The notes under the pieces were generated by a model, which saw only the letters and a list, made by a program, of their open reading frames with translations, was not told the origin of the DNA and searched no databases. This document shows positions 481-27,809 of a stretch of DNA of 64,000 nt, piece after piece. The first letter of the stretch is position 1. Each line of letters opens with the position of its first letter. The position numbers and the translations under genes were made by a program. The stretch is from Amphiscolops sp. MND2022 (Eukaryota), in assembly GCA_964187785.1 (NCBI GenBank), contig OZ076417.1, positions 17,050,001 through 17,114,000 on the forward strand, written 5' to 3'.

Positions 481-607
481 GACAAAATTGTGTCTGAATG
501 AAGTCCCCTGCTTGTGTACATGCTACATTCGTGAACCCCCGAAGGCATCTAGAGCCTGTCATTTCACATTTATGAAGAAATTTCAACCTGAAGTTTGGTG
601 TTTTTTA

Positions 608-1235
608 TTAGTCGGCGCATTTTCCTTTAAGGAAAAAAGCCCGACTATTACAGTGGCTAGTTTTTTTTCTTTTTTTTCGTTAGACCACAGAGCTCATCGC
701 GTATGTACCACTTTTTACAGAAACTGATAAGTTCACTCAGGCCAAGTTCCACCAATGCAAACTTACTGCAAAGGGTCCCCCTTTCGTTTTTTACCTTTTT
801 TACGTAACCTACAAAACCGGAAGACTCCAAAGGGTCCCCCCTTTCAATTTTTTTTCGGCACTGTGCGAATTTTTTTTTCGAAAATTTTTAATTTTTCAAA
901 AGAGTCCCCCCTTCGGATTTTTTGATATTTTGCAACAGAAAGTATGTTAATGAATCCCAAAGGGCCCCCCTTTTCATTTTTCGGCACTATGCGACGTTTT
1001 CGAAGTTTTTTTCAAAAAAAAATTTTTTCAAAAAAATATTCAAAAAAATTTTCAAAAATTTTTTCGTTTCCAGTCGAGAAAAGTGATTTTCCAGTCATAT
1101 CGAGCATGAAAGGCACACTTTGGGTGTCTCGAAAGTGTTTTCAAAGCTTTTCATGAAGACATCCTGGGCATATTCAGAAAACTGAGCTTTTTGAGCCTTA
1201 GATATAGCGCCGACTTTAGATGTTCCCGTCTTGTT
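608..1235 (+). mobile_element. Helentron/HINE-like non-autonomous element
   Basis: T-rich site, 5' AGTCGGCGC within a TAGTCG..CGACTA hairpin, internal 60-bp subrepeats, 3' GCGCCGACT followed by a small hairpin and TGTT. Confidence 0.7.
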
Positions 1236-1304
1236 TCTACTTCATACAACCTTATACGTTATCTGTTCCCTATTTTCAAAGGTACACCTACTAAAAAACA
1301 AAGT

Positions 1305-1445
1305 AAAATATAGTATAGTATATTACAATATGTATTGTATGGTATAGTACAGCATAGTATGGTGAAGTATATTATAGTATAGTATAGTGTGGTATAGTAT
1401 AGTATAGTTAAGTATAATTTCCTGTGTAGTTAAGTATGGTATAAA
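1305..1445. repeat. Degenerate (TAGTA)n microsatellite
   Basis: Visible pentanucleotide periodicity. Confidence 0.8.
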
Positions 1446-4400
1446 AATAAAATAATAGAATACGTATCGTGGACTAAATCAGAAAACATAATATAGAAAA
1501 AGGAAATTATATAATATACCGTTGAAGTAAACTACATGTTATAAATGTTGGCAAGACTGTCTGAATTTTCGTCAAATGTATTCTTGAGCTAATTTTTACT
1601 TTCCGTCAATTTGATTTTCTGGATTCTCGAAAAAAAACCTTAACAAGTAAAAAAATTCTTCTTCATAATACTTTCAAGTAGGAAATAAGCAAAAGCAACC
1701 TTCACATCCGATATTCGAATGAAACTTGAAAGAAGATTATGGAGCGATGCAAACGGAACTATTGCCTCGGAGTTTGAATGAAGTATAGCGGCTGAACTTC
1801 ATCCAGTGAAAATTGATAGCGCGGCGGACAAACGAGGTATTTCAAAATGTCAAAAAGTACATCAATTCCGAATTTCAATTTGCAGTGTCATATTGAAACC
1901 TTAATAGTTCGAATAACTTTGACTTGCCGTTCCGGACCGTTTCCTAGGTCTCTGGTAGCCACAAATATTTTATTCAATGAAAACCCGAAGGTCTGGTATA
2001 GGTGAAGAGTAGTTATGAAGGGCTTAAGAATCCCTAGTCAATATCTTGCTAGGCGAAATGAATACGGAAATCTAATTAGATCTTCAACTACTGTTGGCAA
2101 AATGCAACACAGGTCCCGACTTGCAATTATAGGGTTCGTTTTTCTTACGCTGGATATTTTCACTTTTCCACCGATCGTGGGAAAGTGTCGAAAACCAGCG
2201 TTTGACAACCCAAACTCTTTCATTGTGAGCAAAAAATACTTTGTAAGATAATAGCAGTAGGGCCTTCTTCATGAACTCACGACAAAGGAAAGCGTTTCGC
2301 AATTTTCCATGGCCGCGCAATCATAAGGTGCGGTGCAGGGCTTTCCTTTCGATCGATTCAGAGACAGGCAGATCGATTCCTTGGAAGGAAGGGTGTTGCA
2401 ACGTTTGGGCCTCAGTCTTCTTTTCCAGGGTTGCCCCAGGAGTCCCATCTTGCACTACTGCTCGGATTTAGGTAAATCGTATACACACTCCCAGATATGT
2501 TGACTTTCAAAAATGACACTGTCGAAAGATGAAAGATCTAGAACTTCATAGTTTTGAAGAAACCTGCAATTGCATTTCAACCTGATCTGGCATTGATTAG
2601 GTTCTGAGAGTGTGTTCAGTGATGCTGGCGTTCTATTCTCTCATTTTCTAATGAGGAAAACACTGGTAGTGCGATGCCATTCGACACCGTCGGATTATGT
2701 AGAGAGGAAGTATGGTTGGTCCCTGACCCAGTTTGCATTTTTGATAGTCTGAGATCTTGGTTCTGGGTGCCTCCTAAGGAGGGTTCACTCGGAAGAAGGC
2801 CGAGGCTAGCTATCGTTTTGCAAGCTGTCACCCTATCCCGAGGGCTTAGCGACGTATCTTTGGAGGGAGACTTCTTTGGTTCGTGGGACAATACGCTACA
2901 CAGTGGGCAACTACGGCGTAAGCGAGTTCTTTGCGCATTTGGTGCTCTACACCAATGTACACGCGCTGGATACGGGTCACGCCCGTTTTCCCTAGGTTCG
3001 GTCACGAGCGTCATTTTGCCGGTGTTTTTTTCCGACAAAGCAAAGAAAACACTGATAAAAAGCCATTGGAGATGAAAAACCATTTTTCAAACTGTTGGTT
3101 CTCAATGTGCAACAAATCGTAACGAGAAATGTTTCTCAGTGAAGTTTTCTGGATGTGTAAATATCTTTTTGAATCTCGGGAAATATTTATAGCCTGCTAA
3201 TTCACATCAAAGAAAAGTTTGTTCATAAGTTATTTCTTGGTTTCGAGCCGACGCTAAAAACGGGTCACGGCGTTCTTCCCTAAATTTGGATACGCTCTTC
3301 ATTTTGCCGGCATTTTTCCCGACAAAATTAAATTGTTGCAATCAATTCGGTAAACGTTGACTTTTAATTGACTTTTGAGAACTGAGCGAAGGTCACTTTG
3401 TTCAAAAATGTGCATTTCTCTTAGTTATTCACTAACCAAATTATGAAAGTTCACCTACGAAGGGAAAATCAATGAACAAGCCACAACAGCAATTGTTTTT
3501 TTTTCGGGAAAATTGGAACTTCAGTCACTTCTGGTAAAGTCACCGAAAGCGACAACCGTCTAGTAGTTTAACAAAAGGTCATATTGAAATAGCGATGACA
3601 CGCTTTGAAGAAACACTGGATTCGAAACTCAATGAACTGATAAAACGCTTAATTTCCACGTTAGCGTCGGATTTTTGTCATCTATTGGCATGTCCATTCC
3701 AATGATTTTTTTCTCAAGGCTAGGCAATGACATTCAGGTTAGGATTCATTTAGGTCTATATAAGACTCCGCCACTTTCAGTTCAGACCCTTTCCCACAAG
3801 GCTGGCTCAAGGACGTCCGTCGCGGTTGACGTGGTCTATGTTATCGAACCAAGCCAACCAACAGCATGCTTTCACCACATCGGCTGCGCTCGTCAATGAT
3901 GGACGTCATTTTACGGAAGCTCACATCGAGTAAACTTAGGTCTTTTACCCAAATTCGGCCCACCTCCTCCACTTATTCATTTTTATAGTTTGTATATAGT
4001 AGTAGTTTCGAATGAAAATAGTGTAGATAAAGTGTATAAAGTGCATTATGTTCTGTTTAGTGTGAAAATTGTAAATAGTTTTTTTGAATGTAGTTTTGAT
4101 TTTTAATTAATAGGATGTCTTTTCCATGATGGTTACGTTTTCGTTCGCCAAGTTCGGCCCACCTCTTCCACTTTGCCAATATCAAAAATGCAGACAGCTT
4201 TGATGACTGTTCAACCAGTAAAGGCATTGCTGTTATATCGTAACCTTCACCTTCGTCTCTGGTTTCTTTGTTTCCCTCGAGACGAGGAAGTTTCCTGCCA
4301 ACTCCAGAAGTTCCGGGTTCATTGAGTTCAATCCAGTGTGTTCTAATATTCCTAACTTTCCTTACTGACTAATGTTACTAAACTTTTGTTTATTCCGACT

Positions 4401-4744
4401 CGACTTTTTATATTCTGACTCGAGTTTGTAACCTTTTACATTTTGTGTTATGTAATGTTTAAACTGTAATGTTCAAATGCAGCTGAACGAACAGAACACT
4501 TTCTCGATGAACCAACCAAGTGGTTTCTGGACGGCTGACCAGGCAAGGTAGACAACATCACTTCTCGGTTTCAGTCGCAGATGTGTTCACAGAAGTGACG
4601 GATCTTGTTGTTCAAAATATAAAGTTTCCAAATAACGTTCTTCTCAAACATTCGAACTGAAGATAAACTTCAATCAATCAAAACTTCGAGACTGTGAATT
4701 GATTGTGTTTTTGTATTGTGTTGTTCACTCCAATCTGTCTGACT

Positions 4745-5020
4745 TTACCTAGTCATGTTTGCTTACAGGCTTCTACCACTCCGAATGCCGGTGCTGGGCT
4801 CTTCGCCAGCAGAACACTTCCGTCATCGATTATCATGGAAAGTACGTCAACCAGAGCTCAGCCCGTGCAAGAAAAGGTGCGGACGAAACATACATGGAGT
4901 TACCAGCGTTCAGTAACTTTTTTAAATATTGATGCCACAAAGAGAAGCTAGTGTCATCAAGTTTCACCAAAATGGCGCTTTGTTAATCATTCTCATAAGC
5001 AAGCTAATTTATTTCCTGTC
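4745..5020 (+). pseudogene. Degenerate SET-domain segment (copy A)
   Basis: VCLQASTTPNAGAGLFASRTL...IDATKRS*...WRFVNHSHKQANLFPV, i.e. the GxG/GLFA and RFINHS..N motifs; internal stop. Confidence 0.65.
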
Positions 5021-5854
5021 TTGTTCTCTATCATCATCTTTTCCATAGTTATTCTTTTCTTCTCGATTTATAAAAAATAGGGAGGAGCTTATCTTTTCTT
5101 ACTCCCCCATAATAAATTCGGTGCTAATTTGTAAATATCAGAAAAGTATAACAATAATAGCCTTGAGCATGATTTAGTATAGTATAGTAGTAGTATAGAA
5201 AAATAGCGTTAAGCATAGTATTGTATATTAGTAGTAAAGAAGAGTATAGTATATGTAGTTTGTGAATATTGTTCTAAGAAACCCTTCATTTTTATAGTTT
5301 GTATATAGCAGTAGTTTCGAGAGAATATATCGTAGATAAAAGTGTATAGAGTGCTTTATGTTGTGTATAAGGTGGAATTTGTAAATAGTTTTATGCAGTT
5401 TTAATTTTGAATTAATAGGATGCTTTTCCATGTTGGTTACGTTTTCGTTCGCAAAGTTGGGCATAGCTTCTCCACTTTGCCAATATAAAAAATGCAGACA
5501 GCTTTGATCACTGTTCAACAAGTAAAGGCATTGCTTCGGAAGTTCATTGAGTTCAATCCAGTATGTTCTAATATTTCCAACGTTCCTTACTGACTAATGT
5601 TCTTAAACATTTGCTCATTCTGACTCGCCTTTATATACTGACTCGAACTTGTAACCTTTTCATGTTGTTATGTAATGTTTGAACTGTAATGTTTAAATGC
5701 AGCTGAACGAACAGAACACTTTCTCGACGAACCAAGAGAGTGGTTCCTGGACAGCTGCCCAGGCGAGATTTGAAAGATTCCAGGTACTTCGTAAGCTGTG
5801 TCCTACCTTCTACTGGAAGGTTTCACTAAGTGTTGGTATTCCAGAATTTTATAA

Positions 5855-6413
5855 ATGGTGCTTTCAGGCCTTGACGAATCCGTGACAATACTGCTGGCTG
5901 GAAAGAACTTGATTTTGTACTCCAGCAGCAAATCGAAAAGCCAGCAGCTCGTCCGGTTGCTAACCTCGGTGAAGGCCTTCATGAGCTTCCAGGAAAACCA
6001 ACAGTCGAGGTGTCTTCCACTACATGCAGCCAGGAGAGATGATCTTCCAGCCCAGCAATTGCGCTCATGCTGTCTCAACCCTTTCTCGAAGACGTTCGGC
6101 AATTACTGGCTGGGAGGGCTGCGACAGAGGTGACCCACGCCGAGTAACTGTTCGAAAAAGTACCTGTCAGTGGAAACCAGTTGTGGGGTGCATGCTAGCT
6201 CTCACGACAAGTCGTTTGCGTCGAGAGACAGGATTGTCCGAGGGCAAGAAGAAAAATCCTGAAGACTCCCAAATGGAATTCACAGACCACATTAGTCGAT
6301 TGTGTGTACATTTTGATATGAGAAATTTTGAGCTCCCTCGAACTGCTGGCACGAGGAGCGCCTCTCGCAATGTGGCAGCTGAAGGAACAGAACACTTCGT
6401 AGATGAAGCATAG
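5855..6413 (+). pseudogene. Degenerate JmjC-domain segment (copy B)
   Basis: SGLDESVTILLAGKNLILY, then after a frameshift GVFHYMQPGEMIFQPSNCAHAVSTL, matching the JmjC C-terminal QxPGExIFxP...HxV motif; HxD not intact. Confidence 0.7.
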
Positions 6414-6639
6414 TGGTTCCTGGACGGCTGCCCAGGCGAGGTGTACAACATTACTCCTCGGTTTCAGTCGCAGATGTGTTCACAGAAGTGGCGGAACTTG
6501 CTGTTCAAAATGAATTTTCTAAATAACGTTCTTTTCAAACTGTCAAAATGAAGAAAAACTACGATCAATCAAAACTTCCAGACAATTTTTTGTTTTTGTA
6601 TTTTGTTCACTCCAATCTGTCTGACTTTACCTAGTCATC

Positions 6640-6900
6640 TGCTTACAGGCTTCTACAATTCCAAATGCCGGTGCTGGGCTCTTCGCCAGAAGAACACTTC
6701 CATCATCGATTATCATGGGAAGTACGTCCGCCAGAGCTCAGCCTGTGCAAGAAGCAGTGCGGACGAAACATACATGGAGTTACCAGCGTTCAGTAACTTT
6801 TTTAAATATTGATGCCACAAAGAGAAGCTAGTGTCATCAAGTTTCACCAAAATGGCGCTTTGTTAATCATTCTCATAAGCAAGCTAATTTATTTCCTGTC
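6640..6900 (+). pseudogene. Degenerate SET-domain segment (copy B)
   Basis: STIPNAGAGLFARRTL; alternate frame IDYHGKYV...DETYMELP; then IDA...RFVNHSHKQANL. Confidence 0.65.
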
Positions 6901-7735
6901 TTGTTCTCTATCATCATCTTTTCCATAGTTATTCTTTTCTTCTCGATTTATAAAAAATAGGGAGGAGCTTATCTTTTCTTACTCCCCCATAATAAATTCG
7001 GTGCTAATTTGTAAATATCAGAAAGTATAACAATAATAGCCTTGAGCATGATTTAGTATAGTATAGTAGTAGTATAGAAAAATAGCGTTAAGCATAGTAT
7101 TGTATAGTAGTAGTAAAGAAGAGTATAGTATTTGTAGTTTGTGAATATTGTTCTAAGAAACCCTTCATTTTTATAGTTTGTATATAGCAGTAGTTTCGAG
7201 AGAATATATCGTAGATAAAAGTGTATAGAGTGCTTTATGTTGTGTATAAGGTGGAATTTGTAAATAGTTTTATGCAGTTTTAATTTTGAATTAATAGGAT
7301 GCTTTTCCATGTTGGTTACGTTTTCGTTCGCAAAGTTGGGCACAGCTTCTCCACTTTGCCAATATAAAAAATGCAGACAGCTTTGATCACTGTTCAACAA
7401 GTAAAGGCATTGCTTCGGAAGTTCATTGAGTTCAATCCAGTATGTTCTAATATTTCCAACGTTCCTTACTGACTAATGTTCTTAAACATTTGCTTATTCT
7501 GACTCGCCTTTTTATATACTGACTCGAACTTGTAACCTTTTCATGTTGTTATGTAATGTTTGAACTGTAATGTTTAAATGCAGCTGAACGAACAGAACAC
7601 TTTCTCGACGAACCAAGAGAGTGGTTCCTGGACAGCTGCCCAGGCGAGATTTGAAAGATTCCAGGTACTTCGTAAGCTGTGTCCTACCTTCTACTGGAAG
7701 GTTTCACTAAGTGTTGGTATTCCAGAATTTTATAA

Positions 7736-8294
7736 ATGGTGCTTTCAGGCCTTGACGAATCCGTGACAATACTGCTGGCTGGAAAGAACTTGATTTTGTA
7801 CTCCAGCAGCAAATCAAAAAGCCAGCAGCTCGTCCGGTTGCTAACCTCGGTGAAGGCCTTCATGAGCTTCCAGGAAAACCAACAGTCGAGGTGCCTTCCA
7901 CTACATGCAGCCAGGAGAGATGATCTTCCAGCCCAGCAATTGCGCTCATGCTGTCTCAACTCTTTCTCGAAGACGTTCGGCAATTACTGGCTGGGAGGGC
8001 TGCGACAGAGGTGACCCACGCCGAGTAACTGTTCGAAAAAGTACCTGTCAGTGGAAACCAGTTGTGGGGTGCATGCTAGCTCTCACGACAAGTCGTTTGC
8101 GTCGAGAGACAGGATTGTCCGAGGGCAAGAAGAAAAATCCTGAAGACTCCCAAATGGAATTCACAGACCACATTAGTCGATTGTGTGTACATTTTGATAT
8201 GAGAAATTTTGAGCTCCCTCGAACTGCTGGCACGAGGAGCGCCTCTCGCAATGTGGCAGCTGAAGGAACAGAACACTTCGTAGATGAAGCATAG
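7736..8294 (+). pseudogene. Degenerate JmjC-domain segment (copy C)
   Basis: Near-identical to 5855-6413. Confidence 0.7.
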
Positions 8295-8483
8295 TGGTTC
8301 CTGGACGGCTGCCCAGGCGAGGTGTACAACATTACTCCTCGGTTTCAGTCGCAGATGTGTTCACAGAAGTGGCGGAACTTGCTGTTCAAAATGAATTTTC
8401 TAAATAACGTTCTTTTCAAACTGTCAAAATGAAGAAAAACTACGATCAATCAAAACTTCCAGACAATTTTTTGTTTTTGTATT

Positions 8484-8897
8484 TTGTTCACTCCAATCTG
8501 TCTGACTTTACCTAGTCATGTTTGCTTACAGGCTTCTACCACTCCGAATGCCGGTGCTGGGCTCTTCGCCAGCAGAACACTTCCGTCATCGATTATCATG
8601 GAAAGTACGTCAACCAGAGCTCAGCCCGTGCAAGAAAAGGTGCGGACGAAACATACATGGAGTTACCAGCGTTCAGTAACTTTTTTAAATATTGATGCCA
8701 TTGACAGAAACTACTGCCATCAAGTTTTACCAAAAGGGCGCTTTATTGATCATTCTCATAAGAAAGGTAATCTACTTCCTGTCTCGTTTTCTATCATCTT
8801 CTTTCCCGTTGTTATTTTCTTTTATTCTTGTTTTATTAAAAAAGTGGGAGCTTTTCTTTCTCTCTCCCCCCATCATAAATTCGGTGCTATTTTGTAA
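8484..8897 (+). pseudogene. SET-domain-like ORF (copy C, least disrupted)
   Basis: 137-aa ORF holds both PNAGAGLFA and IDA...KGRFIDHSHKKGNLLPV in one frame; no ELxxDY motif within the ORF. Confidence 0.65.
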
Positions 8898-9959
8898 TTG
8901 TTTGTAAATATTAGAATAGTATGGATTATTAATAGCGTTAAGCATAGTACACTATAGCATACAGTTTAGAACAATATAATTTTGTAGTTTGTATAAATTT
9001 TTTAAACCCGTTTTTTATTTCAAAAGTTTATATAAAGAAGTAGTTTTTAGTATTTGTTTCGAGTGTATGTAGTGTAGATATAGTGATTATACTGGATTGT
9101 TCTGTATGGTGTAAAAATTGAACATTGTTGTTCAAATGCTGTTTTAATTTAGGTATTTGACGTTTTTCCCATGTTGGTAACGTTTTCGTCAATTTGGCCG
9201 TCTCTCTAAAACGTGATCTACCGATGCCTTGTCAGAAATTATTTTTGATTTACAGTGGATAGTCCCACAAGAGCTTCAATTCCTAGATATACAGGTAGTT
9301 ACAATAACAGAAATTTGTTGGACATGTCGGGAAAAGGTCAACAGTTTGCTTCCATGGACTGCAATTCAGCGACTCCCACTAGTCACCGATGAAAACAACC
9401 CCAAATAAGTTCAACATAAACCTTCACCCGGAATCAATTAGTTTCAAGGACCTATACGAAGTTCTCGCTTACAGAGCTCTTGACAACACTAGACAACAGA
9501 GCTCTTGACAACAGAGCTCTTGATCCACTACTGGAAGAATTGCTGTGACACATGAAACTCTAATGGCACGCACATGATTTTTTTCAACTTCTTTCAACCT
9601 TTTCACTGTATTAGGTTATTCACTACAATAAAACTTATGCATTCAATGTTTATTCATTGAATGAGAAAGGCCGCAGACCGCCAGCAATATTATTAAAAGT
9701 TGGCCGAAGAGCGCTTGTAGAAAATTAAAAATGTTGAGTTGATCAAAAGAAAATTTCAAATTTAGATAGAGGCAAGTGAACTTCCTTTGTTTAGGATCCC
9801 CCTAAATTTAATTCTCACACTTATAGTCACTGCCGAACAAAATATCTGAATTTTTCAGTATCACGACAAGAATTTTACAGAAAGAAAGTAGACATCTTGA
9901 GATTTCAATATTATTCCTGATACTGCAGAAATATTAGTAACAGATTTCTTAAAAAATGC

Positions 9960-10670
9960 TTCCGGTGACTGCTCCTTAACATCCGTTTGTTGAACTTTTG
10001 TAAAGTATACCACTCTGAAAGTGATATGGTTCAATGTAACTTCAAAAATTTATCGGTAGCAAACTCTCCAACGAAGCGAAGGTAACAATGACACAACTCT
10101 GAAAACGTTTGATGAAAAAAAATTCCACAATTTCCGAACTTCAAAAACCTGGCTCCAGTGATTCTTCGTTATTTTCCTTTTGTTGAAAGTTCGTTAATAA
10201 GGGCACTCCAAAAGCGATATGGTTGGAGGGACCTTCGAAAATTCATCAAAAACAAACTTCGAAATGAAGTGAAATCGAACATTGTCACAATTCTGAACAT
10301 TTTTGATGAAACAAAAAAACAACATACCCGATTTCTTGAAAAACTGCTTCCAGTGACTCTTCCTTAATTTCGATTTGTTGAACTTTTGTAAAGTATTCCA
10401 CTCCCAAAGTGATATGGTTCAATGGAACTTCGAAAATTCATCGGTAACGAACTTTGAAATGAAGTGAAGGTGAACACTGACACAACTTTGAAAACGTTTC
10501 ATGAAACAAATTACCACATTTTCCGATATTCAAAATCCTGCCTCCCTCGAGGGATTCTTTCTTAGTATCCGATTGTTGAAATTTTGTTTAAAAAGAGCAC
10601 TCCAGAAGTGATATATGGTTGGAGGGACCTTCGAAAATTCATCAAAAACAAATTTCGAAATAGTAAAATG
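9960..10670. repeat. About 195-bp satellite, 4 copies with alternating (dimeric) structure
   Basis: G(T/C)GATATGGTT at 10021, 10214, 10409 and 10608 (the last with an extra AT); copy 1 resembles 3 and copy 2 resembles 4. Confidence 0.8.
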
Positions 10671-10756
10671 CGCTTCTTGTAAATTTGACATTCTGGAGAA
10701 AATCAAGGTCGAATTTGAGTACAACAACCGTGGAATAGCATTTTTCAAGCGGTGAT

Positions 10757-11047
10757 TGTTTAGTGATCAACTAAATTGTTAAACTGGAGAATCAAAACCA
10801 GAGGTGAGGTTAAGAATCAATTGAAGTTTGCGTCTTCTATCTATGGCGGTATGAAAGAAGTGAAAGGAGCTCGAGAGCTATATATTATTTACAAACAATA
10901 CCGGTCGATGGCTGTAGTTTTTAGGAGGCTTAAATCATTTGTAAACAAACATGTCAATCAAACTGCACAAATGTAAGTGTCAATCAAAGATGTCAGTGAC
11001 GTATTAGTAAACATCATGTCATTCAAAATTAGATGTGGCAGTGAACA
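10757..11047 (-). repeat. 3' LTR of BEL/Pao element
   Basis: Copy of 17643-17933 (the same 66-aa ORF appears at the same offset in the ORF track); preceded in element sense by purine-rich AAGGCGGCCGGTA; outer side flanked by GTGAT. Confidence 0.95.
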
Positions 11048-11060
11048 TACCGGCCGCCTT
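11048..11060 (-). promoter_or_regulatory. Polypurine-tract-like site of BEL element
   Basis: AAGGCGGCCGGTA immediately precedes the 3' LTR TGT in element sense. Confidence 0.65.
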
Positions 11061-11093
11061 GGACCACTAGGTGCAAAAGTTAATGAGTTTCAG

Positions 11094-11994
11094 ATGAAAA
11101 TGTCAAGGAATGTAAATGTTGAGACAGTGAAGGAAGCTGTGAAAATTCTGGAAGATGCAGTTGGAGGAGTTGGGGTCAATCACAGGTTGCCCATCAAGAC
11201 GGTTCATGAAATTGAGCAGGATCCTACAAAGCCAGCTGTCGTCATCGAGCCTGTCATGAGATATCTGGAGGCGCGATTTGAAGAGTCGTCTCGAACGGCA
11301 TCAACCCAATCCTCTATTTTGAAGGACTTCGAGTTTAGAGTAAGGCACCGGTGGGGAGCATTTGGAGAGTGCAGTGTATTTGAAGGCCGGCTATCCTCGC
11401 ACACCAGTCGAAAGATTCTATCAGCTGCTTCAAGATGTGTTATTCGATATCGAACCTGGCAATAAATCTCTTTGTCACGTTGGTGATGCTCAACTTCTGT
11501 GGAATGACAGCTGTGCCTTCTCTCAATGGCACGCTGATTTGAAGGACAGAACTGTTGCTGTCTGGTCACAGTTGCAAAGAGGTAGAAAGTTGTGGTTTGT
11601 GGCTCCTGGAAGGCGTAGCTTGAGTTGGTTTGTGGGATCGTATCGACGGGACCTATTTACATGGGCTGGGGAACTCAAGAGAAAATGGCCAGAGCGTCTA
11701 CAGTGTCATGTCCAGCTTCCGGGTGAGGTCATCTACCTTCCACCTGGTTGTGCACACTGTGTCCTGTCACCTGAGGCGTCCACATTGTTGTCGTTCCATA
11801 TTGAGCTCCCAGAGGTGATTTTGTATCCACGAACCGAGGCTGCTCTGAAGAGAATTCTGCCTGATACAGATGAAAGCCAGGATGAGTTTGAGCGGCCCAC
11901 AACACAGGGATCTTCCAAATCCAAATCTGTGCGAAAGGGTCGACAGTTGCCGAAGAGAAAAAGGAAGTTCTGTCGTGATAATTCTAAACGCTGA
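11094..11994 (+). CDS. JmjC-domain Fe(II)/2-oxoglutarate oxygenase (JMJD6/JMJD4-like motif spacing), antisense cargo of the BEL element; one frame switch or short intron near 11340-11390
   Basis: ORF 11362-11994 has FSQWHAD (H 11530, D 11536), GRKLWFVAP (K 11587) and QLPGEVIYLPPGCAHCV (H 11755), plus a basic tail RKGRQLPKRKRKF. The upstream frame is open from ATG 11094 (MKMSRNV...DPTKPAVVIEP). Confidence 0.85.
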
Positions 11995-12385
11995 TCAAGG
12001 TTATTAATATTTTTCATCATTTTATGTTACTGCAAACAATTTATTTTACCGCAAACTATAAATCAAATATTTAACTATAAATGTTTTCAATTTACTTCAT
12101 CGAACCATTTACTAGAGCACTTAAGAAACAGCAGCAGCTGATAGTAGCACCAGCTCGCTGAACGGTCAGTTCAGAAGGAAGTAAAAACAAAATTTTGGTA
12201 TTGCAAAAGAAATCAAAGAGAAACAAAAAGTTTTGGGTTGGTAACTCAGTAGCATGCGCGTGCGCGCAGTCCGAATGCTCTCAACAGGTTTCTGTGAAGC
12301 TTAGCAACGGATAGAGAAGAGCATTGGGAGGGTCATGACGTAGCCCGATTTAGGTTAAGGTTAGTAAGCGTTGAGAAAAATAGTT

Positions 12386-15300
12386 TTATTCATCGAAAAA
12401 GAGTTTGACTAGTTTCGTAAGCGGGCGAGTAAAAATTCCATTGGCAGTTTGTACACGAGCGACACGTGCTGTTCCATCATTTCCAGTGTAGAGATTCAGA
12501 ATCCGTGCACGAGGCCAGTGGAGTGGCGGAACTCGATCTTCCTTGATGAGAACCAAGTCAGAGACCTGTAGAGGTTGAGTGTCGAGCTTCCATTTGTCGT
12601 GCTGCTGTAAATTCGACAGATACCAGCGGGACCAGAAGCTGTCATGAATTTGCTGCACTAACTTCAATCGGGTGTGAAGTGTAAATCGGGCCTTTGGTGG
12701 AGCATTGCTACTCTCAGTTGGCAGAGAATGTAAGGGCGCACCGATCTGAAAATGTCCAGGCGATAGTACTTCCATATCGTTAGGATCGTGCGACATTGGA
12801 GTCAAAGGACGTGAGTTGAGGCATGCCTCCACATGGGCAAGTACTGTGCTGAGCTCCTCGAAGGTCAACGCTTGCAAGCCAATAGATCGTCTGAGAATTT
12901 TACAGCTCTTGACCGCTGCTTCCCAGAGTCCGCCGAAGTGTGGGGCCCTTGGAGGGATCGTGACCCATTCTACTCCTCGTGTGGCTGCATACGCGCTCAG
13001 TGAAGACTCCTTGTTGGTACTTAATAGGTCCTGGAGGGCATTCAACTCATTGCGAGCACCGATGAGAAGATGGTGCTTGGCAGACCACGCCGTGCTACAA
13101 ATCTTTTGAGGCCACCAATACAAGCTGCTGATGTGAGGGCTGAGACTAGTTCGATATGAACAGCCTTTGTTGCGAAGCAAACGAAGATGAAGATGTAGGC
13201 CTTTTGTGTGGATCTCGACATTGAACTTTTCAGTGTGAGCGGGCCGGCGAAGTCCAGTCCCGTTTTGGTGAAGGGTCGACTGGGAGTTATTCGCTCTGCT
13301 GGAAGATCGCCCATTCGTGGTTGCTCCGCTCTAGCCATGAACCTGCGACATGTAGTGCAACCTCGAATTACCCGCTGAACACATCTCGGACCATCAATAA
13401 TCCAATAATGTCGGCGGAGTTCATAGAGAGTAGCTTGCGGACCGCCATGAAGAACATCTGCATGAGCTTTTCTGATGAGAAGTGTGGCAAAATGGGATTT
13501 TCCCGCGATGATTGCTGGATAGGTTGCATCAGTGTCGTGTGAGCCCTGTCCGAGTCGACCACCAACTCTAATGATAGAGAGCTCTTCGTCGAAGAAGGGG
13601 GAGAGGGAGAGGAGTCGTCCATGATACTGTGACATGCGCGTGTGCGCAGCCAAGTTTTTGAGATCCTCGCCAAGGAACTGTTTTTGATGAAGCGTCACGA
13701 GCTTGCTGCGTGCCTTGACGAGCTCCGATTGTTGAATTGGGCCTTGAATGGGCGATAAACCACTGAAACTGTCCAAAAAGCGTAGAACGAAAACAAGTGT
13801 TCTTTGCAGACGGTTGAAATTAGAGAAGCAATCAAAGTCTATTACAGCTCGTTTTTCGACCAAATGTAAGCCGGTGAGTGGCCTCTTTCGTTTTTCGGGG
13901 GATGCTGTTGTGGGAATGGAAGGCTGATGGGGCCATGAAGAGTCGCAGTGGCTTAGCCAGGAAGGTCCTTGCCACCAGAGATCAAATGAGATCATTTCTG
14001 ACGCTGTCAAGCCACGCGATACACAGTCCGCAGGATTTTGATCGGATGAAACATGCTTCCATTGGGACGGGGGAATCTGTTCCTGAATGAGAGCCACCCT
14101 GTTACCGACAAAACAGCTCCAGGTTCCAGGATAACTGGCTAACCATGACAGCACGATTGTGGAATCTGTCCATCCAATGATTTCTGTTATTGTTATCGGA
14201 AGGCTTTGCAGAGCGTTGATGGTCGAGCGCAATAACTGGGAACCCAGGGCAGCAGCGCAGAGTTCTAGACGAGGTAGTGTGAGTGTTTTGATTGGAGCAA
14301 CCCGTGACTTGGACGTGAGAAGCGAAACCTTTATTGTTCCATCTGTTCTCTTCACTCGTGAGATCACTGCTCCATATGCCACTTCAGAAGCGTCACAGAA
14401 AACATGAAGTTCCATCGTTGTCTCCGTTTGATTAGGTATGAGCACACACCTAGGAATATTGCGTCTTGAGATGTTGGGAAGATCAGTACGAGCAGAGAGC
14501 CACGACTCCAAAATGTTGGGAGGAACATCATCGTCCCATGCCACGCCTGCCACCCAGGTTTGCTGAACCAGGATCTTGAAACGAATAATGACGGGTGAGA
14601 GCCAGCCTAGTGGGTCATACAGCTTGGCTATGTCGGAGAGCATCTGTCGTTTTGTTTTCACAACTCGAAAGCTGCCTTCACCAGAAACTGTGAAGTGGAA
14701 GACATCCTGGAGCGGGGACCAGTGAACACCAAGAACTTTAATCTGATGGGTGTGATCATGGATTTCATAGGCTTCGGGTGCTTCCTTCAGTTCAGCAGGC
14801 ATGTGACAGATTGCCTCGGGCTTGTTTGATGACCACTTTCGCAGTCTCATGCCAGCACACTGAAGGGTTGATTGAAGTGCATCCTGCAATTGCCTTGCCT
14901 CATCCACTGTTGGTGCTCCAGAAAGCATATCATCAACAACGAAATCCCTCAAAATTACCTGTCTCGCATTGGCATGTTCACTCTCTTTCCCTACAGCTTG
15001 CAAACTCTTGATAGCATGATGTGCTGATGATCTCACTCCATATGTCACGCGAGTCATGCGCCACGTCTGGATTGGGTCACAAGGTTGGTCTCGCCAAAGG
15101 ATGCGGTGGTAGTCACGGCTGGAGGGGTGTAGACCGATTTGCCTGTACATCTTCTCTACGTCTGCTGAGAGGGCCACAACATGAAATCGGAAACTCAGTA
15201 AAATGTCGCAAAGATTGTCCTGGAGAGTTGGACCTGTCATCAATGAGTCGTTAAGTGACGTGCCATTCGTGGTAACAGCTGAAGCATCGAACACAATCCG

Positions 15301-16173
15301 TAGCTTTGTTGTGGTACTGCTTTCCTTCACTACGTGATGGTGTGGCAAGTAGTAGACATCATGGGGTAGCTTGAAGAGTTCATCAGAAGGTACTCGTTCG
15401 AGGTGACCGGCATCAATGAAACCATTCATGAAGTCGACGTATGCCTGTTTCTGAGGGTGATTGGCTAGACGTCGTTCTACACTAAGCAGTCGTCTTTTGG
15501 CTTGGGAGAAGCTGTCGCCAAGGGGTTGGGCATCCGGTTTGAAAGGAAGTTTGACAATATATCTTCCTTCAGCATCACGAGTAGTCGTCTGAATGAAGAA
15601 ATCCTCGCAGGCCTTTTCTTCAGCTGAAAGCTGCCTCTCCGGTGATGTTGGAATATTCTCGATTTCCCAAAAACGAGACAAGAGCTTGTCTGCTTGGGAG
15701 TCATTGCAGGGGGAACTGAAATGAAGAGTTTGAGCGTTGCATAAAAGTGTTCGAGCTGTCTTGTGTTCCAAAGTTGATTTGGTCTGATCCGAATAAAGCG
15801 TGCCACTGAGAACCCAGCCACACAGTGTTTCCCGAACGTAGAGTCGGGGCTGTATCTGAAACTTGTTATTCAGAACAATGGTTTCGAAGAGGTCAACTCC
15901 TATGAGCAGGTCAATTGGGCCGGGAATATTGAAGTCAGGATCTGCGAGATGGAGCTCTTCCATTTGCTTGAGGGACGACTTGTCAATGGGATGCGTTGGA
16001 AGGTTATACGTGATCGTTTTCAGAACCAGAGCTGTGGTCTGTAGTTGTTCTGACTTGTAGGGACACCAGAGATCCAGAGTAACTTCAGACTGGGGTCGTG
16101 GCATGCGCGTGCGCGCTATCCCTGTGTAGGTCACAGCTGTACGGGTTTGCTTCAGCCCCAATTTCTGAGCCAT
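12386..16173 (-). pseudogene. pol: BEL/Pao Pol (protease remnant, RT, RNase H, integrase), frameshifted
   Basis: ORFs 13042-16173 and 12386-13180. RT: LPHHHVVKESSTTTKLRIVFDAS, ADVEKMYRQI, FVVDD. RNase H: LHVFCDASEVAYGAV. IN: H..H/CTTC, GLDFAGP, HFGGLWEAAVK. The SDNGTNF motif is deleted with a frameshift near 13063; the protease D(S/T)G motif is absent at about 16174-16230. Confidence 0.93.
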
Positions 16174-16227
16174 GTGGGTGATAATTGCCTTTTAGCCTAA
16201 TTGTTGTGATAAACTTATTAAATAGAA

Positions 16228-17577
16228 TCATCTTGTCAAAATGGTCGCAGTTCCAATCGACGTCCCAGCATCCTTGGTGTGTCCCACTTGTTGTAGGTCC
16301 TTGTGAAGAAGCGTGTGATGTTTCCTCTGGCATGTCCTGCATGTATTTTTACTCGTACACGCCTTTGGTCGATGCCCAGTTGAGAGACAATTGAAACATA
16401 CATCCAGTTCCTTGGCCTTGGTGTATCGTTCGTCAGTAGAAAGTTCGTTAAAAACTTGGCACTTGAAGAGGCGGTGGTCAGAAGCCTTGCAAAGGATACA
16501 ACCTTGCTCTTGTGTTCCCAGGTACGAGTGATTGTGAACTGAAGACTGCGGCTTGGATGATACCTTCTGTGTAACCTCTTGACCCGACTTGGTAGGACTT
16601 GCTTCTAATGCTCTCACACGTGCCGCTAGAAAGGCTAGTAGGTCCGGCAGTGTTTGGGGATCCGCATTACTTCCAGCGGAAGGTTTTTGAAGCTCCCACA
16701 GCTTTCGTGTTTCTGGATCTAACTTCTCGGCAATGAGAAAAACGATGAGATGATCATCTGTGACACCTAACTTGGATAGGGCTGACGTGTGCTCGTGCAT
16801 TACTGTGTGCAGTTTACGTAGCGCAGTGGAATGCTCGGTCCTCAAAGTAGGGTAGTTGTAGAGTGCTTGGAATCGAGCCCGAAGAATACATCGCTTGTTC
16901 TCGTACCTCTCACGGATTAGTCCACATGCGATTGGATAATTGTCATCAGTTATCGATAAAGAAGAGACAACCTTGAACGCTTCACCCTTGAGGGAACTCT
17001 TGAGATAGTTGAGTTTTTGGGAACCAGATAAGGAATCAGCATCAACTGATGCTTGAAACTGGTCCCAGAACGATGTCCATTCAGTATACTTGCCATCGAA
17101 GAGAGGAAGTGCAATCTTAGGAAGTTTGACCTTACCTGAGGGGCTGGCGGATGTTTGAACTGTTGATTGGGGAGTTTTGATTAGGTACTTGACTTCTGCG
17201 AGCTTCTCCTTTACCCTGTCAACGTATTCGAGAATATCGATTTCCTCATCCGCGCGTCGTTCATCGGTCATCATTTGCAGGATCTCTTCGTCAAGCTGTA
17301 TCAGCGTTCCCAACTTTTCTGTCAGTCGTTCGTGGCAACCTCTAATCTGTTGAACGATAGATGCATTGGCGTCCGCTTGCGGGATAAGATCGTCCATCTT
17401 GGATATGAGCCTTGCTACAGCGCCACGATGTGCAGCTCGGGTCCTTCTGATACGAGATTCCTTGGAAGATGGAGATGATTCTGGACTTTCGTCATCAGTG
17501 TGGGCTTCCAGCACCGATAGGGACTTCTTCTGCCGCTTGGACTGTTTAGACTTGGCCATTGAGCATCGATAAGACAA
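16228..17577 (-). CDS. gag: BEL/Pao Gag (DUF1759-like region, three Cys/His knuckles)
   Basis: 449-aa ORF: KLPKIALPLFDGKYTEWTSFWDQF, CILCKASDHRLFKC, CFNCLSTGHRPKAC, CRTCQRKHHTLLH. It stops where the protease should begin. Confidence 0.93.
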   Translation of the reverse strand: MSYRCSMAKSKQSKRQKKSLSVLEAHTDDESPESSPSSKESRIRRTRAAHRGAVARLISKMDDLIPQADANASIVQQIRGCHERLTEKLGTLIQLDEEILQMMTDERRADEEIDILEYVDRVKEKLAEVKYLIKTPQSTVQTSASPSGKVKLPKIALPLFDGKYTEWTSFWDQFQASVDADSLSGSQKLNYLKSSLKGEAFKVVSSLSITDDNYPIACGLIRERYENKRCILRARFQALYNYPTLRTEHSTALRKLHTVMHEHTSALSKLGVTDDHLIVFLIAEKLDPETRKLWELQKPSAGSNADPQTLPDLLAFLAARVRALEASPTKSGQEVTQKVSSKPQSSVHNHSYLGTQEQGCILCKASDHRLFKCQVFNELSTDERYTKAKELDVCFNCLSTGHRPKACTSKNTCRTCQRKHHTLLHKDLQQVGHTKDAGTSIGTATILTR

Positions 17578-17622
17578 TTGTAGTTTTGAAGAGATAATTG
17601 AACTAAATGGAGAACCGATTAG

Positions 17623-17640
17623 GTCCCTTGTGGGGCGCCA
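17623..17640 (-). promoter_or_regulatory. Primer-binding site TGGCGCCCCACAAGGGAC (tRNA-Lys-like)
   Basis: Begins with TGG 2 nt inside the 5' LTR; 15/18 match to the classic tRNA-Lys(UUU) PBS TGGCGCCCGAACAGGGAC. tRNA identity is tentative. Confidence 0.8.
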
Positions 17641-17642
17641 AA

Positions 17643-17933
17643 TGTTTAGTGATCAACTAAATTGTTAAACTGGAGAATCAAAACCAGAGGTGAGGTTAAG
17701 AATCAATTGAAGTTTGCGTCTTCTATCTATGGCGGTATGAAAGAAGTGAAAGGAGCTCGAGAGCTATATATTATTTACAAACAATACCGGTCGATGGCTG
17801 TAGTTTTTAGGAGGCTTAAATCATTTGTAAACAAACATGTCAATCAAACTGCACAAATGTAAGTGTCAATCAAAGATGTCAGTGACGTATTAGTAAACAT
17901 CATGTCATTCAAAATTAGATGTGGCAGTGAACA
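17643..17933 (-). repeat. 5' LTR of BEL/Pao element
   Basis: TG...CA termini, adjacent to PBS, outer side flanked by GTGAT TSD. Confidence 0.95.
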
Positions 17934-18455
17934 GTGATGACTATGAGAGCTCAGAAAGTATGGACTGCTGGAGGAGTTAATCCGAGCAATACTTGAGTTC
18001 AAGAGAACAACTTTGACCCACAAGGGAGGATTGCATACAATTACTTCGTTTAAAATTGATTGCTGGCTACATCAATTGATGCTTGACTGATGAATTCTCG
18101 AATTAAGTATCAAAAGTCAGAAGAAAAATGATAAGGTTTTCGAGAACTGACATGCTGTTTTTGGGCCTTCTAGGCAATTGTTTCTCGATGATAAGAAACG
18201 AACAGCGGAAATTGATTAAAGAACAAGACCAACTAAATGCATTTCCCTTCCAGGGAAACATTTATTTCAACGCAAGAAGTTGGTTTTGGATCTCATCGTT
18301 ACAAAAAATTTGAAAATTTAAGAACAAAACCAAAAACATAAAATCAGAAACGTATCTGATACATCGTCTGAAACGTTCCTCAAATTTTGCCTCATTTGTG
18401 GCGACAGGGAAGAGTGTCGATTGAAACGATGAGGTGTAACATATAATAATGACAA

Positions 18456-24400: not shown

Positions 24401-27400
24401 AAACTTTGACCGTTTCCACGTGAGATCATTCGCATAAAATATTTATTGAACGGCCGTCCTTTTCCTGAAATCCAGTCGGATATCGGGTCGGATTTATTCT
24501 CCTTTATACCGCTATTTTCTTAAGAGCACTAAAGATTTTTTGTCGATTGAGAAAAGTTCATTAAATACTTTTCGCTTATTTTCAGTACTTATTCAGATAT
24601 TACGTCACTTTCGCCTTTTGGCGCTTCAAAAACAATTCAATCAAATGCACTGCTTCGTTATAGATGGCCGAGAAAAAAAACGAATGACTGACTATTACCT
24701 CACTCCTAGCAGATCGAATATTAGAATCTCTGGTGTTAGTTCGAAACAGTGGACAGATTTGAAGCCGACATTGACGTCAATACCAGACTGAAGTTTACAG
24801 ATGACCGAAAACGCATCAGACACATTTTGCTCGTAGTTCACTCGCTCCTCTTCCGACGAAAATGTCTCGGGCACTCTGTTGATTAGATAGTCACCTATAA
24901 AACGGTCTAAATAAGCTGTTAGTGTAAGAAACAAACTGAACCTTTATTTGTGAAAAAAAGAATTGGACAAAATCAAAAACAGCTCTGAATTCTTCTATCA
25001 TCCACGTTATCGAATTCTACAGTTTTGTTGGGCTTTTGAAATGCAGGTTTGCATATAATGAAGAAACTTCCTAATTTCATCGGTTGTATTTACTACCAAA
25101 TTGGCATGTGGGAATTTTGTAACAATTGGCACCTAATTTGTAATTTTTGTTAATTTTCCAAGTACTTATTCATTTCCTGAAGACTGTTTTACATCAAGAT
25201 AAGTGGTGTTATGTTTTTTGATGAGGTTTTTTTCTAGCATTTCAGTTCATTTACTATCTTATTACGTGGCACAGTTATTTTTCACAAAGATTGGGGATCC
25301 AGTTTTCGGTTTTAGACTTGTTTTCGATAAAATTTATATCAACAAAATCTGCTAATTAAGGCGATTTTATCAATTATCTTAAACATTCAATTTGTCTTTC
25401 CAGTTCTCTAAATTTATTAGTGAAACATAGAAATCACTAGATGTTAAATGTTAGCTTTGTTTACATGCAGTCTAAGTTTTTTCTTTGAAATAAGGGTTCA
25501 ATTCGATTCTTACACTATTGTAGCTGTGATTCGTGAGAAAATATTGCAAATCGTTTTCTATTTGGGAAAAGACCGGTAAACGGAAGAACTGAACGACAGC
25601 TTGAATAAAACAGATATGAAAAGTTATGATATCAAGTGTGAACAATTTTCACTATGAATAAATCTCCAGGTGTTACATTATCATTTGTTGATTTCAAATA
25701 ACAATCGACGTCTGCATAAGCATGTCAACTAGTCTGCATGATATTGCATGATTCAGGTCCCAGGAGTTGGAACCAAGCACGTGATTAAATGTTGCCGGGC
25801 CGGGCTTATAACCGGGATTTTCCAGCTTGTATTTTTTCGGAACGGGTATATCAATTCGAAAAATGAATCAAAAATTTATACATTAAACTGGGCTATTTTA
25901 TTTCCGCAATTGATTCCTTTCATTTGCCCGCTGTAGTTTTAGACGCACAGATTGAGACTCGTGGAGCCCAGATGTCTGCCAACAACTGTCTGATGTTGAA
26001 TTCTGTTGTAAAAAATGGGATTTTTGAATTCCCATGATGCTTATACCTGATTATCATTTACAATTTACTTTCGAGTATCAAATTCGTTTTCGGTCAGTTT
26101 CGTCGGGCATTAAAAATGTTCAAAAATATCGGGTGATGTGTTAGGGTTTTAAAAACGACTCGGGTCGGGCTTCGGGTAGAAAATCATGACCCGGTTCCAA
26201 CTCTGGATCCCAACATAAGCATTCAATGAAACGCATAGCTGCGTCATTAAAATCGGCCCTTCCGGGGCTCGATGCCGCTAGGGTATCCAAAAAAACGGTA
26301 AACATCAAACACTTTTGAGCACTCAATTTCAAAAGGTTCAACAGGTTCAAAATAGCGCTGTAATTTGGACTGCAGCGTGTCAATCATTCAGTATACCAAT
26401 TTCAAGTATTATTTAATTACCAATTATTATTTCAATTTGATTAACAATTACTAATTCAAATTTATTGGATTTCCACATCCTGAAGATTTCCTTAAAAATT
26501 CAAAACCTATCATTTCCACAATTTTTTTAATAGAGAAAACCTGATTTTATGAACACTTCCACAAATAAACCTCAAATTCCAGAGTTTTCTCGTGACAATC
26601 CTAATTCTGAATGTTGCGGATGATATTCATCTCATTGATACTTAATTCTTAGTTCATCACTGACAAAGGTTTCCTAGCCTGACCGTCAACACTAATTGGT
26701 TGTCTGCATTTGCGGGGGTGTTCTCACAGTCAAAAAATCTACACAGTGTTACGTCACCAATGCAGATCATTTACCATTAGCAGGGATTTTAATAAGAAAG
26801 GGGTCACCATTTTTGGCAGTCAGAAACCCTGACAAAAGAACGCCAGAGTAAATCATGTAAGCACTTACGACTCGTCAGCAATAAAAGTTGAAATTTCTCA
26901 AATAAATGAGTTGAGATAATATGCTTTTTCGAGGACACACCGAAGCATATACCAATGCTTCCATGAACTACCATAGTTTTAATTAAACATTTGAAAATAC
27001 ACATGGAAATTTTCTGCGAGTTGGGTAACCATGTAATTCATTTACGCAAGCACACGTGATGTAGCTGTTAACCTTATGAGAAACACTGGGCAAGGAATAG
27101 CATCCCAACACAATTTTGATACAGGACAAAGGACTCACCTAAATGCTTCATCAAGTCGGTAGTTGTGATATACTCTATGCCTTTTGAGAATTCGATGACC
27201 CTGCGTAAAAGAAGAACATTCATTATTGCGATCAAGGGGCAAGGTCCATTTTCGTTCTGGGTGACAATTGGGCAATCATTTTTGTGAAACTTGATCCATT
27301 TGATATGATACAAAGAATTATCGACTGCATTAGCCCCAACTGATAATTCGACAGCTCGAGTCTCTGTCAAGCTAGGTACTTTGTCGGAAACTATTGTTGT

Positions 27401-27469
27401 GCTTTCCTCTGAAGTACTTTCTGATTGACTCGCCAAAACAGGGTCCTGCTCTTCTTGCAAGGCAGTCAT
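18456..27469 (-). CDS. MINDY1/2: MINDY1/2-family K48 deubiquitinase (FAM63), 6 coding exons, 433 aa
   Basis: Exons 27469-27139, 24894-24699, 20496-20331, 20058-19956, 19241-19024, 18743-18456 join in frame (1302 nt). Motifs: catalytic TQNENGPCPLIAI, DVNVGF, LYHGWLVDPQ, FRNNHFST, LVTDQGF; MIU-like DYELALRL and DEELARRIQ; C-terminal CaaX CNIL. Intron 4 needs a GC donor. AATAAA (- strand) at 18261-18266. Confidence 0.95.
19860..19945 (-). mobile_element. tRNA-derived SINE fragment in MINDY intron 4
   Basis: GGTCGTGGGTTCGAACCCGGG T-arm/B-box on the - strand. Confidence 0.5.
20855..24410. repeat. Two-copy tandem duplication (period about 1784) inside MINDY intron 2
   Basis: Near-identical ORFs at 21265/23049, 21526/23310 and 21944/23728. 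Confidence 0.93.
21766..22283 (-). mobile_element. Related HINE-like element (second copy at 23550-24067)
   Basis: AACAAGCCGGGAAAG end and a hairpinned other end ...GGCGATTTTAGTCAACTAAAAGCGCCCACTG; subTIR match is imperfect. Confidence 0.45.
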
Positions 27470-27809
27470 CAGACCTGAAAATGGAATGTGAAATGACAGT
27501 TTGTATTTACTTTTTTCTCCTAACCCCGCGATTGGTTCCAAATTGCCACAGTATAGCTTGTATTATCCGAACAAGGTTACCTTTGGCTTAATGAACATTG
27601 GTGGGACGACATCACTACCGCTGCCTACTCAATAATAGCGAAAGCTGCGCAACACATCAACTTGGAGACAAAACAAGAACTTCATGAAAAATTCTCTGGA
27701 AGTTACTCTAACGTGGAATATCAACTGACAATTATTATCATTATGGCTTTGTACGGCAGTGCGGATACGAATTGAATCACTACGGTCGAAAACAAGGGTT
27801 ATCGACATC

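Follow-up and report, generated by a model that had tools for sequence, protein, structure and literature searches.

Antisense open reading frames (ORFs) between pol and the 3′ long terminal repeat (LTR) have been described in the maize Grande (gene23), rice RIRE2, and Silene Retand retrotransposons (PMC7264820, PMC11963269). Ty3/Gypsy elements of Phalaenopsis carry an ORF for an AlkB-type 2-oxoglutarate (2OG) oxygenase that is an RNA N6-methyladenosine (m6A) demethylase in vitro (PMC9289625), and LTR retrotransposons of bdelloid rotifers carry enzymatic ORF3s, which encode a GDSL esterase or a DEDDy exonuclease (PMC5408684). VANC proteins are the anti-silencing proteins of Arabidopsis VANDAL transposons (PMC5735166, PMC10398659), and the JmjC protein Epe1 counteracts heterochromatin in fission yeast (PMC7192584). 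Here, we describe a BEL/Pao LTR retrotransposon that contains an antisense gene for a JmjC-type Fe(II)/2OG oxygenase. The element lies in a 64,000-nt stretch of DNA from Amphiscolops sp. MND2022 (GenBank assembly GCA_964187785.1, contig OZ076417.1, positions 17,050,001 to 17,114,000), which we refer to in its entirety as the window.

Animal retrotransposons are silenced by their hosts largely through repressive histone methylation. To our knowledge, almost no element-encoded countermeasures exist besides plant VANC, and none is an enzyme that erases such marks. Fungal Kyakuja-Dileera-Zisupton DNA transposons reportedly carry TET/JBP dioxygenase genes, as Iyer et al. are said to have described in PNAS in 2014. 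Our literature search found no report of a JmjC gene carried by a retrotransposon, with subscription journals and Repbase reports outside its scope and priority elsewhere therefore possible; papers mentioning both JmjC and gag-pol were unrelated to the arrangement seen here. This outcome agrees with a preliminary description of the locus, made from the sequence alone, which did not know the gene as a standard BEL feature.

Organization of the element and its JmjC gene

Positions 10757 to 17933 of the window comprise a complete BEL/Pao LTR retrotransposon (Belpaoviridae) on the minus strand (Table 1). Its LTRs are direct repeats with TG...CA ends, and the 5-bp target site duplication (TSD) GTGAT stands on either side of the element. 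The primer-binding site (PBS; TGGCGCCCC...), read directly from the sequence, begins 2 nt inside the 5′ LTR. Minus-strand Pfam domains follow in the order DUF1759 (1.9e-32), which is the BEL/Pao type of Gag domain, Peptidase_A17 (1.5e-49), Integrase_H2C2 (5.2e-08), and DUF5641 (8.5e-28), with weak reverse transcriptase (RT) and RNase H matches between Peptidase_A17 and Integrase_H2C2. The pol protein has 1,287 BEL/Pao relatives at an E value of ≤1e-50, the best named one being a sponge protein of only 41% identity. Given the LTRs, the GTGAT duplication, the PBS, the order of the Pfam domains, and these pol relatives, the BEL/Pao assignment is sound.

Because the LTRs are identical, the insertion is recent. 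Autonomous coding capacity is absent from the window copy but present in a sister copy, L001, that is 97 to 99% identical. Relative to L001, the gag, pol, and JmjC genes of the window each contain one frame change and no in-frame stop. The window copy is therefore a recent but non-autonomous insertion, barring assembly errors behind the three indels.

The JmjC gene (∼300 codons) occupies the plus strand of the interval bounded by the pol stop (12386) and the 3′ LTR and is thus convergent with pol. The larger of its two pieces matches the Pfam JmjC profile (PF02373) at 25.3 bits, a small margin over the gathering score of 24, while the family hidden Markov model (HMM) matches the two pieces at 8.9e-78 and 2.1e-25. 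An H-A-D motif is encoded at 11530 to 11538, the lysine of a GRK motif at 11587 to 11589, and the second histidine at 11755 to 11757; the basic tail (11917 to 11991) is predicted to be disordered. The preliminary description had correctly recognized the BEL/Pao element with its LTRs and TSD, the antisense JmjC gene enclosed by the LTRs, the H-x-D...H triad with the 2OG-binding Ser and Lys positions, and the basic tail. Its reading of 11094 to 11994 as one ORF has to be abandoned, however, as this interval of 901 nt is not a multiple of three and spans two reading frames. Compared to the intact, 99%-identical L001 protein (P0001), the window gene shows one frame change and no in-frame stop. We considered a splice model for the two frames and rejected it; intact relatives have one uninterrupted frame on genomic contigs, and the break is therefore a frame change, not an intron. 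The conserved start is probably the second ATG (11100) rather than that at 11094.

On the JmjC strand, 299 stop-free codons are kept across lineages sharing ∼52% of residues, versus maximal stop-free stretches of 80 to 113 codons on the opposite strand. Chance is therefore excluded as the origin of this frame. The spacer between the JmjC and pol stops measures 121 to 393 nt in relatives. The LTR contains a palindromic TATATA at ∼10879 that can be read on both strands. Just inside the 3′ LTR, a block of ∼30 nt has hardly changed among four lineages, even though their pol DNA is only ∼65% alike, and a second noncoding block conserved in four lineages, TTTCAGA, lies a few bases before the conserved ATG.

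Recurrence of the JmjC gene in related elements

The comparison set consisted of the window, L001, L002, L003, L004, L005, and L011, with L006 and L012 as distant members. Protein searches retrieved intact JmjC relatives of 289 to 339 aa, and intact frames of 299 to 339 aa occur in at least 13 close relatives. In L001 (ENA ERZ25074608), the 326-aa P0001 lies inside 291-nt LTRs of 100% identity and adjoins gag (467 aa) and pol (1,280 aa), both intact. As L001 has a different target duplication (AAGGC) and flanks unlike those of the window, the two are independent insertions. L011 comes from the same sample as L001 at similar coverage; its LTRs are 99.3% identical, its duplication is AATCT, and a truncated JmjC gene (74% identical to P0004, an intact relative) lies between pol and the 3′ LTR.

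The convergent JmjC/pol layout is also found in L002 (ENA ERZ17082352) and L003 (from a Tara Oceans run), whose JmjC protein is 52 to 57% identical to P0001 and whose pol DNA is ∼65% identical. This lineage combines a 299-aa JmjC protein with gag-pol fused into one 1,744-aa frame (L002, 1741 to 6975), whereas gag and pol occupy different frames in the lineage of the window and L001 (window, 16173 to 16228; L001, 15214 to 15217). A 153-nt repeat of L002 was considered as a potential LTR and ruled out, as L003 is the same element in circular permutation with its LTR collapsed. At its right end, L002 passes from the opening bases of the JmjC gene into the pol end of another copy. At this junction (7470 to 7688), the first JmjC bases abut pol-end and spacer sequence of the same family, which represents either a JmjC-deleted variant or a chimeric path in the short-read assembly. 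In L005 (NCBI JAAUXW01), a pol C terminus (74% identity) is convergent with a JmjC gene (65% identity); a search for related loci with the narrower family alignment (A2) gave only four contigs, all from JAAUXW01.

An antisense position between pol and the 3′ LTR was thus observed in the window, L001, L002/L003, L005, and L011. Across three lineages, the ranks of pairwise identity agree between the pol C terminus (72 > 69 > 64%) and the JmjC protein (65 > 60 > 53%), which therefore fits the prediction of co-inheritance. Beyond the JmjC-bearing lineages, pol identity falls abruptly from 65% to 46%. The data sets with relatives are few and either marine or unnamed, and a scan of viral contigs for further loci of the JmjC family gave no matches. 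As judged by these comparisons, the JmjC gene is a stable component of a BEL/Pao lineage and moves with the element. The preliminary description had proposed from a single copy that the gene travels with the element, and the independent insertions and the layout shared by divergent lineages now substantiate it; placement of the JmjC segment outside the LTRs, which it had named as a contrary case, is already contradicted by three assemblies.

Several loci at the margins of this group deserve separate mention. The nearest pol relatives outside the JmjC-bearing elements (P0051 and P0052, ENA ERZ26695794) are of the BEL/Pao type with 44% pol identity, and on their contigs pol is directly followed by a short antisense ORF that is truncated where the contig stops. 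At L006 (1451 to 8309), the JmjC protein P0034 (∼25% identity; Pfam JmjC, 1.2e-6) is encoded just inside the right copy of two 99-nt direct repeats, which lie 6,760 nt apart and are 77% identical; a neighboring ORF has a faint SET-domain match. At L012 (5610 to 12068), a P0037-type JmjC relative, interrupted by one in-frame stop, faces copia-type pol fragments (SH3_retrovirus and RVT_2) in convergent orientation. This gene sits between 227-nt repeats of 84% identity in a nested-repeat region, and positions 1 to 3467 of the same locus are filled by a ∼197-nt satellite. Finally, the Logan contigs encoding the distant family members P0035, P0036, P0039, and P0041 (SRR14219478, SRR14219491, and others) measure 1.1 to 1.5 kb and contain little beyond the JmjC ORF; they would fit monocistronic transcripts if the respective runs are transcriptome sequencing (RNA-seq) data.

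Selection on the JmjC gene

Within a lineage, comparison of the L001 and L004 JmjC genes gave a ratio of nonsynonymous to synonymous substitution rates (dN/dS) of 0.29 at a dS of 0.33, an estimate based on few sequence pairs. Between lineages, the proportion of nonsynonymous differences (pN) in the JmjC gene was 0.36 versus a saturated synonymous value (pS) of 0.82; the corresponding values were similar, at 0.28 for gag and 0.22 for pol. All full-length close relatives (13/13) keep the motifs Ser/Thr-x-x-His-x-Asp, Gly-x-Lys-x-Trp, and Pro-x4-His-x-Val. In a 20-member alignment (A1) that extends down to 22% identity, conservation reaches ≥90% at residues H173, D175, Q186, K192, and W194 and is complete at L187 and G190. 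H248 is invariant among the close relatives (alignment A2). From these values, the JmjC gene is judged to be under purifying selection rather than in neutral decay, and the catalytic residues are conserved across the family.

Relationship to characterized JmjC proteins

An exhaustive search of 1.84 billion representative proteins yielded 21 matches at an E value of ≤0.001, none of which is a named cellular JmjC protein, and a profile search for the JmjC family returned no further named proteins. Of the 20 family members, 16 match PF02373 and a single one matches Cupin_8, which is the Pfam profile for JMJD5, JMJD7, and FIH; together with the match of the window gene, the PF02373 result confirms the JmjC assignment given in the preliminary description. 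When the family profile was compared with the Protein Data Bank (PDB), the matches were ceKDM7A, the Caenorhabditis elegans KDM7 homologue (5.9e-6), JMJD6 (3e-4), and PHF8 (9e-3). The metal and 2OG positions (Ser/Thr-x-x-His and Gly-x-Lys) are in register with their counterparts in ceKDM7A and JMJD6.

In the AlphaFold model, the predicted local distance difference test (pLDDT) score is 78 overall and ∼90 in the core (residues 31 to 283), followed by a disordered tail (residues 284 to 326). A Foldseek search of the PDB with this model gave 449 matches at an E value of ≤0.001, and the best 50 of these 449 are all JmjC enzymes. JMJD5, JMJD6, KDM7A, PHF8, KDM2A, TYW5, and JMJD7 were matched with E values of ∼1e-7, template modeling (TM) scores of 0.35 to 0.55, and identities of 11 to 16%; JMJD5 and JMJD6 lead the matches (TM scores within the same range; 13 to 15% identity). 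A search of a viral structure library retrieved generic beta-helix matches only. The modeled structure is a double-stranded beta-helix JmjC fold, which assigns the protein to the Fe(II)/2OG oxygenase superfamily. The architecture is JmjC only, with a single domain (∼290 to 300 aa in total) and a disordered tail; Pfam searches for reader or targeting domains (PHD, CXXC, and F-box/LRR) gave none, only overlapping JmjC- and cupin-type profiles on the catalytic core. As far as alignment and model allow a comparison, the likeness to KDM7/PHF8, JMJD6, and JMJD5 is only remote, and neither sequence nor fold separates a demethylase from a hydroxylase.

Proposed role and alternative explanations

Taken as a whole, the explanation we favor and consider likely is that a BEL/Pao lineage possesses a third, antisense, and selected JmjC gene besides gag and pol, whose product would be an active nuclear oxygenase that benefits the element. 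The gene has descended with the element as the latter diversified and has been kept by purifying selection. Because it is antisense to and convergent with pol, it is not translatable from the genomic RNA and therefore requires a promoter of its own, located at the 3′ LTR or within it, from which it would presumably be expressed as its own unit. The protein would enter the nucleus; its conserved basic tail suggests nuclear import or nucleic-acid binding, with the disordered segment serving as a putative localization signal or binding region. The leading candidate for its activity is the erasure of repressive methyl marks from histone lysines on copies of the element or in their vicinity, and we offer such anti-silencing as a tentative assignment. 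An almost equally likely, and equally provisional, candidate is that the enzyme hydroxylates a protein of the host or of the element, and an RNA target appears improbable. The "chromatin eraser" countering host silencing that was put forward in the preliminary description is accordingly one of at least two activities of comparable likelihood. In its most specific form, the proposal would make this the first retrotransposon-encoded JmjC enzyme, a nuclear histone demethylase expressed from an antisense 3′ LTR promoter that clears the element's own copies, in a family that may cross LTR-retrotransposon superfamilies, given the distant relative that is convergent with copia-type pol fragments in the same genome (L012); this version is speculative, and we would not expect all of it to hold.

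Several observations weigh against the favored explanation. L004 and L011 are decaying copies, the window copy is broken, and one contig end (L002) points to a JmjC-deleted variant; not every copy, therefore, requires the gene in cis. The dN/dS estimate, as noted, derives from a small number of pairs. Neither L006, which lacks gag and pol altogether, nor L012 has BEL/Pao genes nearby, and the JmjC family is therefore not exclusive to BEL/Pao. Other elements may carry members of the wider family, or some members may be cellular genes, and L012 hints that it is shared between LTR-element superfamilies. The protein also lacks the PHD, Tudor, CXXC, and JmjN reader domains, unlike bona fide histone demethylases, and its likeness to demethylases and to hydroxylases is equally remote (11 to 16% identity; TM scores of 0.35 to 0.55).

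Small JmjC-only proteins are mostly hydroxylases. The principal alternative, less probable than the favored explanation but appreciably so, is that the gene is indeed element borne and selected but encodes a JmjC-only protein hydroxylase rather than an enzyme for histone methyl-lysine, in the manner of JMJD5, JMJD6, and JMJD7, acting on a host factor or on Gag/Pol. The general tendency just mentioned, the ∼290-aa architecture without reader domains, the lead of JMJD5 and JMJD6 among the Foldseek matches, and the second place of JMJD6 in the profile search all point in this direction. The rarity of Cupin_8 matches (1/20) relative to PF02373 matches (16/20) and the KDM7 demethylase at the top of the profile search argue the other way, although the likeness is too remote to decide. 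Far less probable is a passenger, that is, a host or foreign JmjC gene captured once, without function and decaying. Such a gene could account for the damage in the window copy, L004, and L011 and for the possible deletion variant, yet the copies with a damaged JmjC gene also have damage in gag and pol. A passenger is also difficult to reconcile with intact 299- to 339-aa frames in at least 13 close relatives, retention across lineages with 65 to 74% pol identity, a dN/dS well below 1, and invariant catalytic residues.

We assign a similarly slim chance to the antisense unit acting as RNA, either as a regulatory antisense transcript or as a source of double-stranded RNA, a role that has been discussed for antisense ORFs of plants, with the protein being incidental. 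Antisense transcripts of LTR elements with possible regulatory roles are known (PMC7264820), and the conserved noncoding block upstream of the JmjC gene would suit this idea, but a 299-codon frame, an excess of synonymous change, and invariant catalytic residues would be left unexplained. Slimmer still is the prospect of an enzyme that modifies RNA, for instance, a TYW5-like enzyme acting on tRNA and thereby tuning Gag-Pol frameshifting. TYW5 is found among the Foldseek matches, a link between wybutosine status and retroelement frameshifting has been discussed (PMC2938197), and the window/L001 lineage has gag in one frame and pol in another. However, TYW5 is not a top Foldseek match, and the L002/L003 lineage keeps the JmjC gene even though its gag-pol is a single frame. 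The selected, element-borne oxygenase gene thus stays our preferred explanation, with demethylation and hydroxylation as its candidate activities.

Feature coordinates and surrounding sequence

The features of the element are collected in Table 1. No Rfam matches were found in the window. Tandem repeats of ∼195 nt (9951 to 10527) lie directly left of the insertion site, and farther left (4700 to 8900), a ∼1.88-kb unit forms a tandem array in which each unit contains the same ORFs. Each unit includes ∼30 aa that resemble the second-His strand of the JmjC family (5985 to 6410 and 7866 to 8291; family HMM E value of ∼2e-4); this motif is too short to interpret and was set aside. Clear host-type genes are limited to a MINDY deubiquitinase exon (1.8e-18), and a zf-BED ORF is probably transposon derived; the two features lie at 27074 to 27541 (minus strand) and 36136 to 36759 (plus strand).

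Table 1. Features of the BEL/Pao element, by position in the window
Feature	Position	Strand	Evidence or remark
TSD GTGAT, left copy	10752..10756		Repeats at 17934-17938
3′ LTR, 291 nt, TG...CA	10757..11047	-	100% identical to 17643-17933
Invariant noncoding block just inside 3′ LTR, upstream of JmjC start; polypurine-tract/LTR-end position	11048..11077		Four-lineage comparison
JmjC-type Fe(II)/2OG oxygenase gene, broken by 1 frame change	11094..11994	+	Pfam JmjC, family HMM, intact relatives P0001 and P0004
Spacer between convergent JmjC and pol stops	11995..12385		Poly(A)-signal-like hexamers downstream of JmjC stop
pol: protease A17, RT, RNase H, integrase (H2C2 finger, DUF5641); 1 frame change	12386..16173	-	Pfam; 97% identical to L001 1,280-aa pol
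gag: DUF1759, weak zinc knuckle; 1 frame change relative to L001 gag; outer bounds approximate	16228..17577	-	Pfam
Primer-binding site, 2 nt after 5′ LTR	17622..17640	-	Direct reading
5′ LTR, 291 nt	17643..17933	-	100% identical to 3′ LTR
TSD GTGAT, right copy	17934..17938		Matches 10752-10756

Significance and comparison with known systems

We consider the finding real: the anatomy is confirmed and has been extended by comparison, the window copy is defective, and the suggested function, though plausible, is a proposal. A JmjC oxygenase under selection in a BEL/Pao lineage would be a concrete and testable candidate for a counter-silencing factor. If the enzyme is instead a hydroxylase, it would represent a new route by which a retroelement modifies host or particle proteins. 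In either case, the gene adds to the few enzymes that LTR retrotransposons have fixed as accessory genes (AlkB, dUTPase, GDSL esterase, and DEDDy exonuclease), and it indicates that antisense accessory genes are not limited to plant elements.

As a protein, the gene product shares the JmjC fold, the H-x-D...H triad, and the Ser/Thr and Lys contacts to 2OG with KDM7/PHF8/KDM2, JMJD5/JMJD6, and Epe1. These are cellular genes, however, with 11 to 16% identity to the family described here, and their PHD, CXXC, and F-box readers are absent from it. The resemblance to VANC is one of concept only, namely, a factor that is encoded by a transposon and directed against the epigenetic silencing of that transposon's copies. 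VANC, which plant DNA transposons encode, binds DNA in a sequence-specific manner and is no oxygenase; our protein searches gave only JmjC relatives and no homology to VANC. The Kyakuja-Dileera-Zisupton elements reportedly offer a comparable case of a mobile element with a 2OG oxygenase able to act on an epigenetic mark, but these are said to be DNA transposons with an enzyme that acts on DNA bases and is not of the JmjC type.

Among LTR retrotransposons, the bdelloid ORF3s are likewise enzyme genes that animal elements acquired as separate transcription units. ORF3 types are shared between unrelated retroelement classes, for which L012 provides a similar hint here. The bdelloid genes differ in their sense orientation, in their enzyme classes, and in belonging to elements other than BEL/Pao. 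The Phalaenopsis elements form an LTR lineage with a fixed extra Fe(II)/2OG oxygenase gene, whose product has been proposed to remove a mark set by the host, as may be the case here. They differ in oxygenase family, element superfamily, and kingdom, and the activity was shown in vitro for the AlkB protein, while that of the JmjC protein is predicted from its sequence. The antisense ORFs of the plant elements, finally, agree with the JmjC gene in position and orientation and in being present in most copies of the family. The plant ORFs also have their own promoter upstream, and some of their products are nuclear, features of the plant systems that we count as likenesses. They belong to Ty3/Gypsy elements and have no recognizable domain or enzyme fold, whereas the gene described here belongs to an animal BEL/Pao lineage and encodes a predicted JmjC oxygenase.

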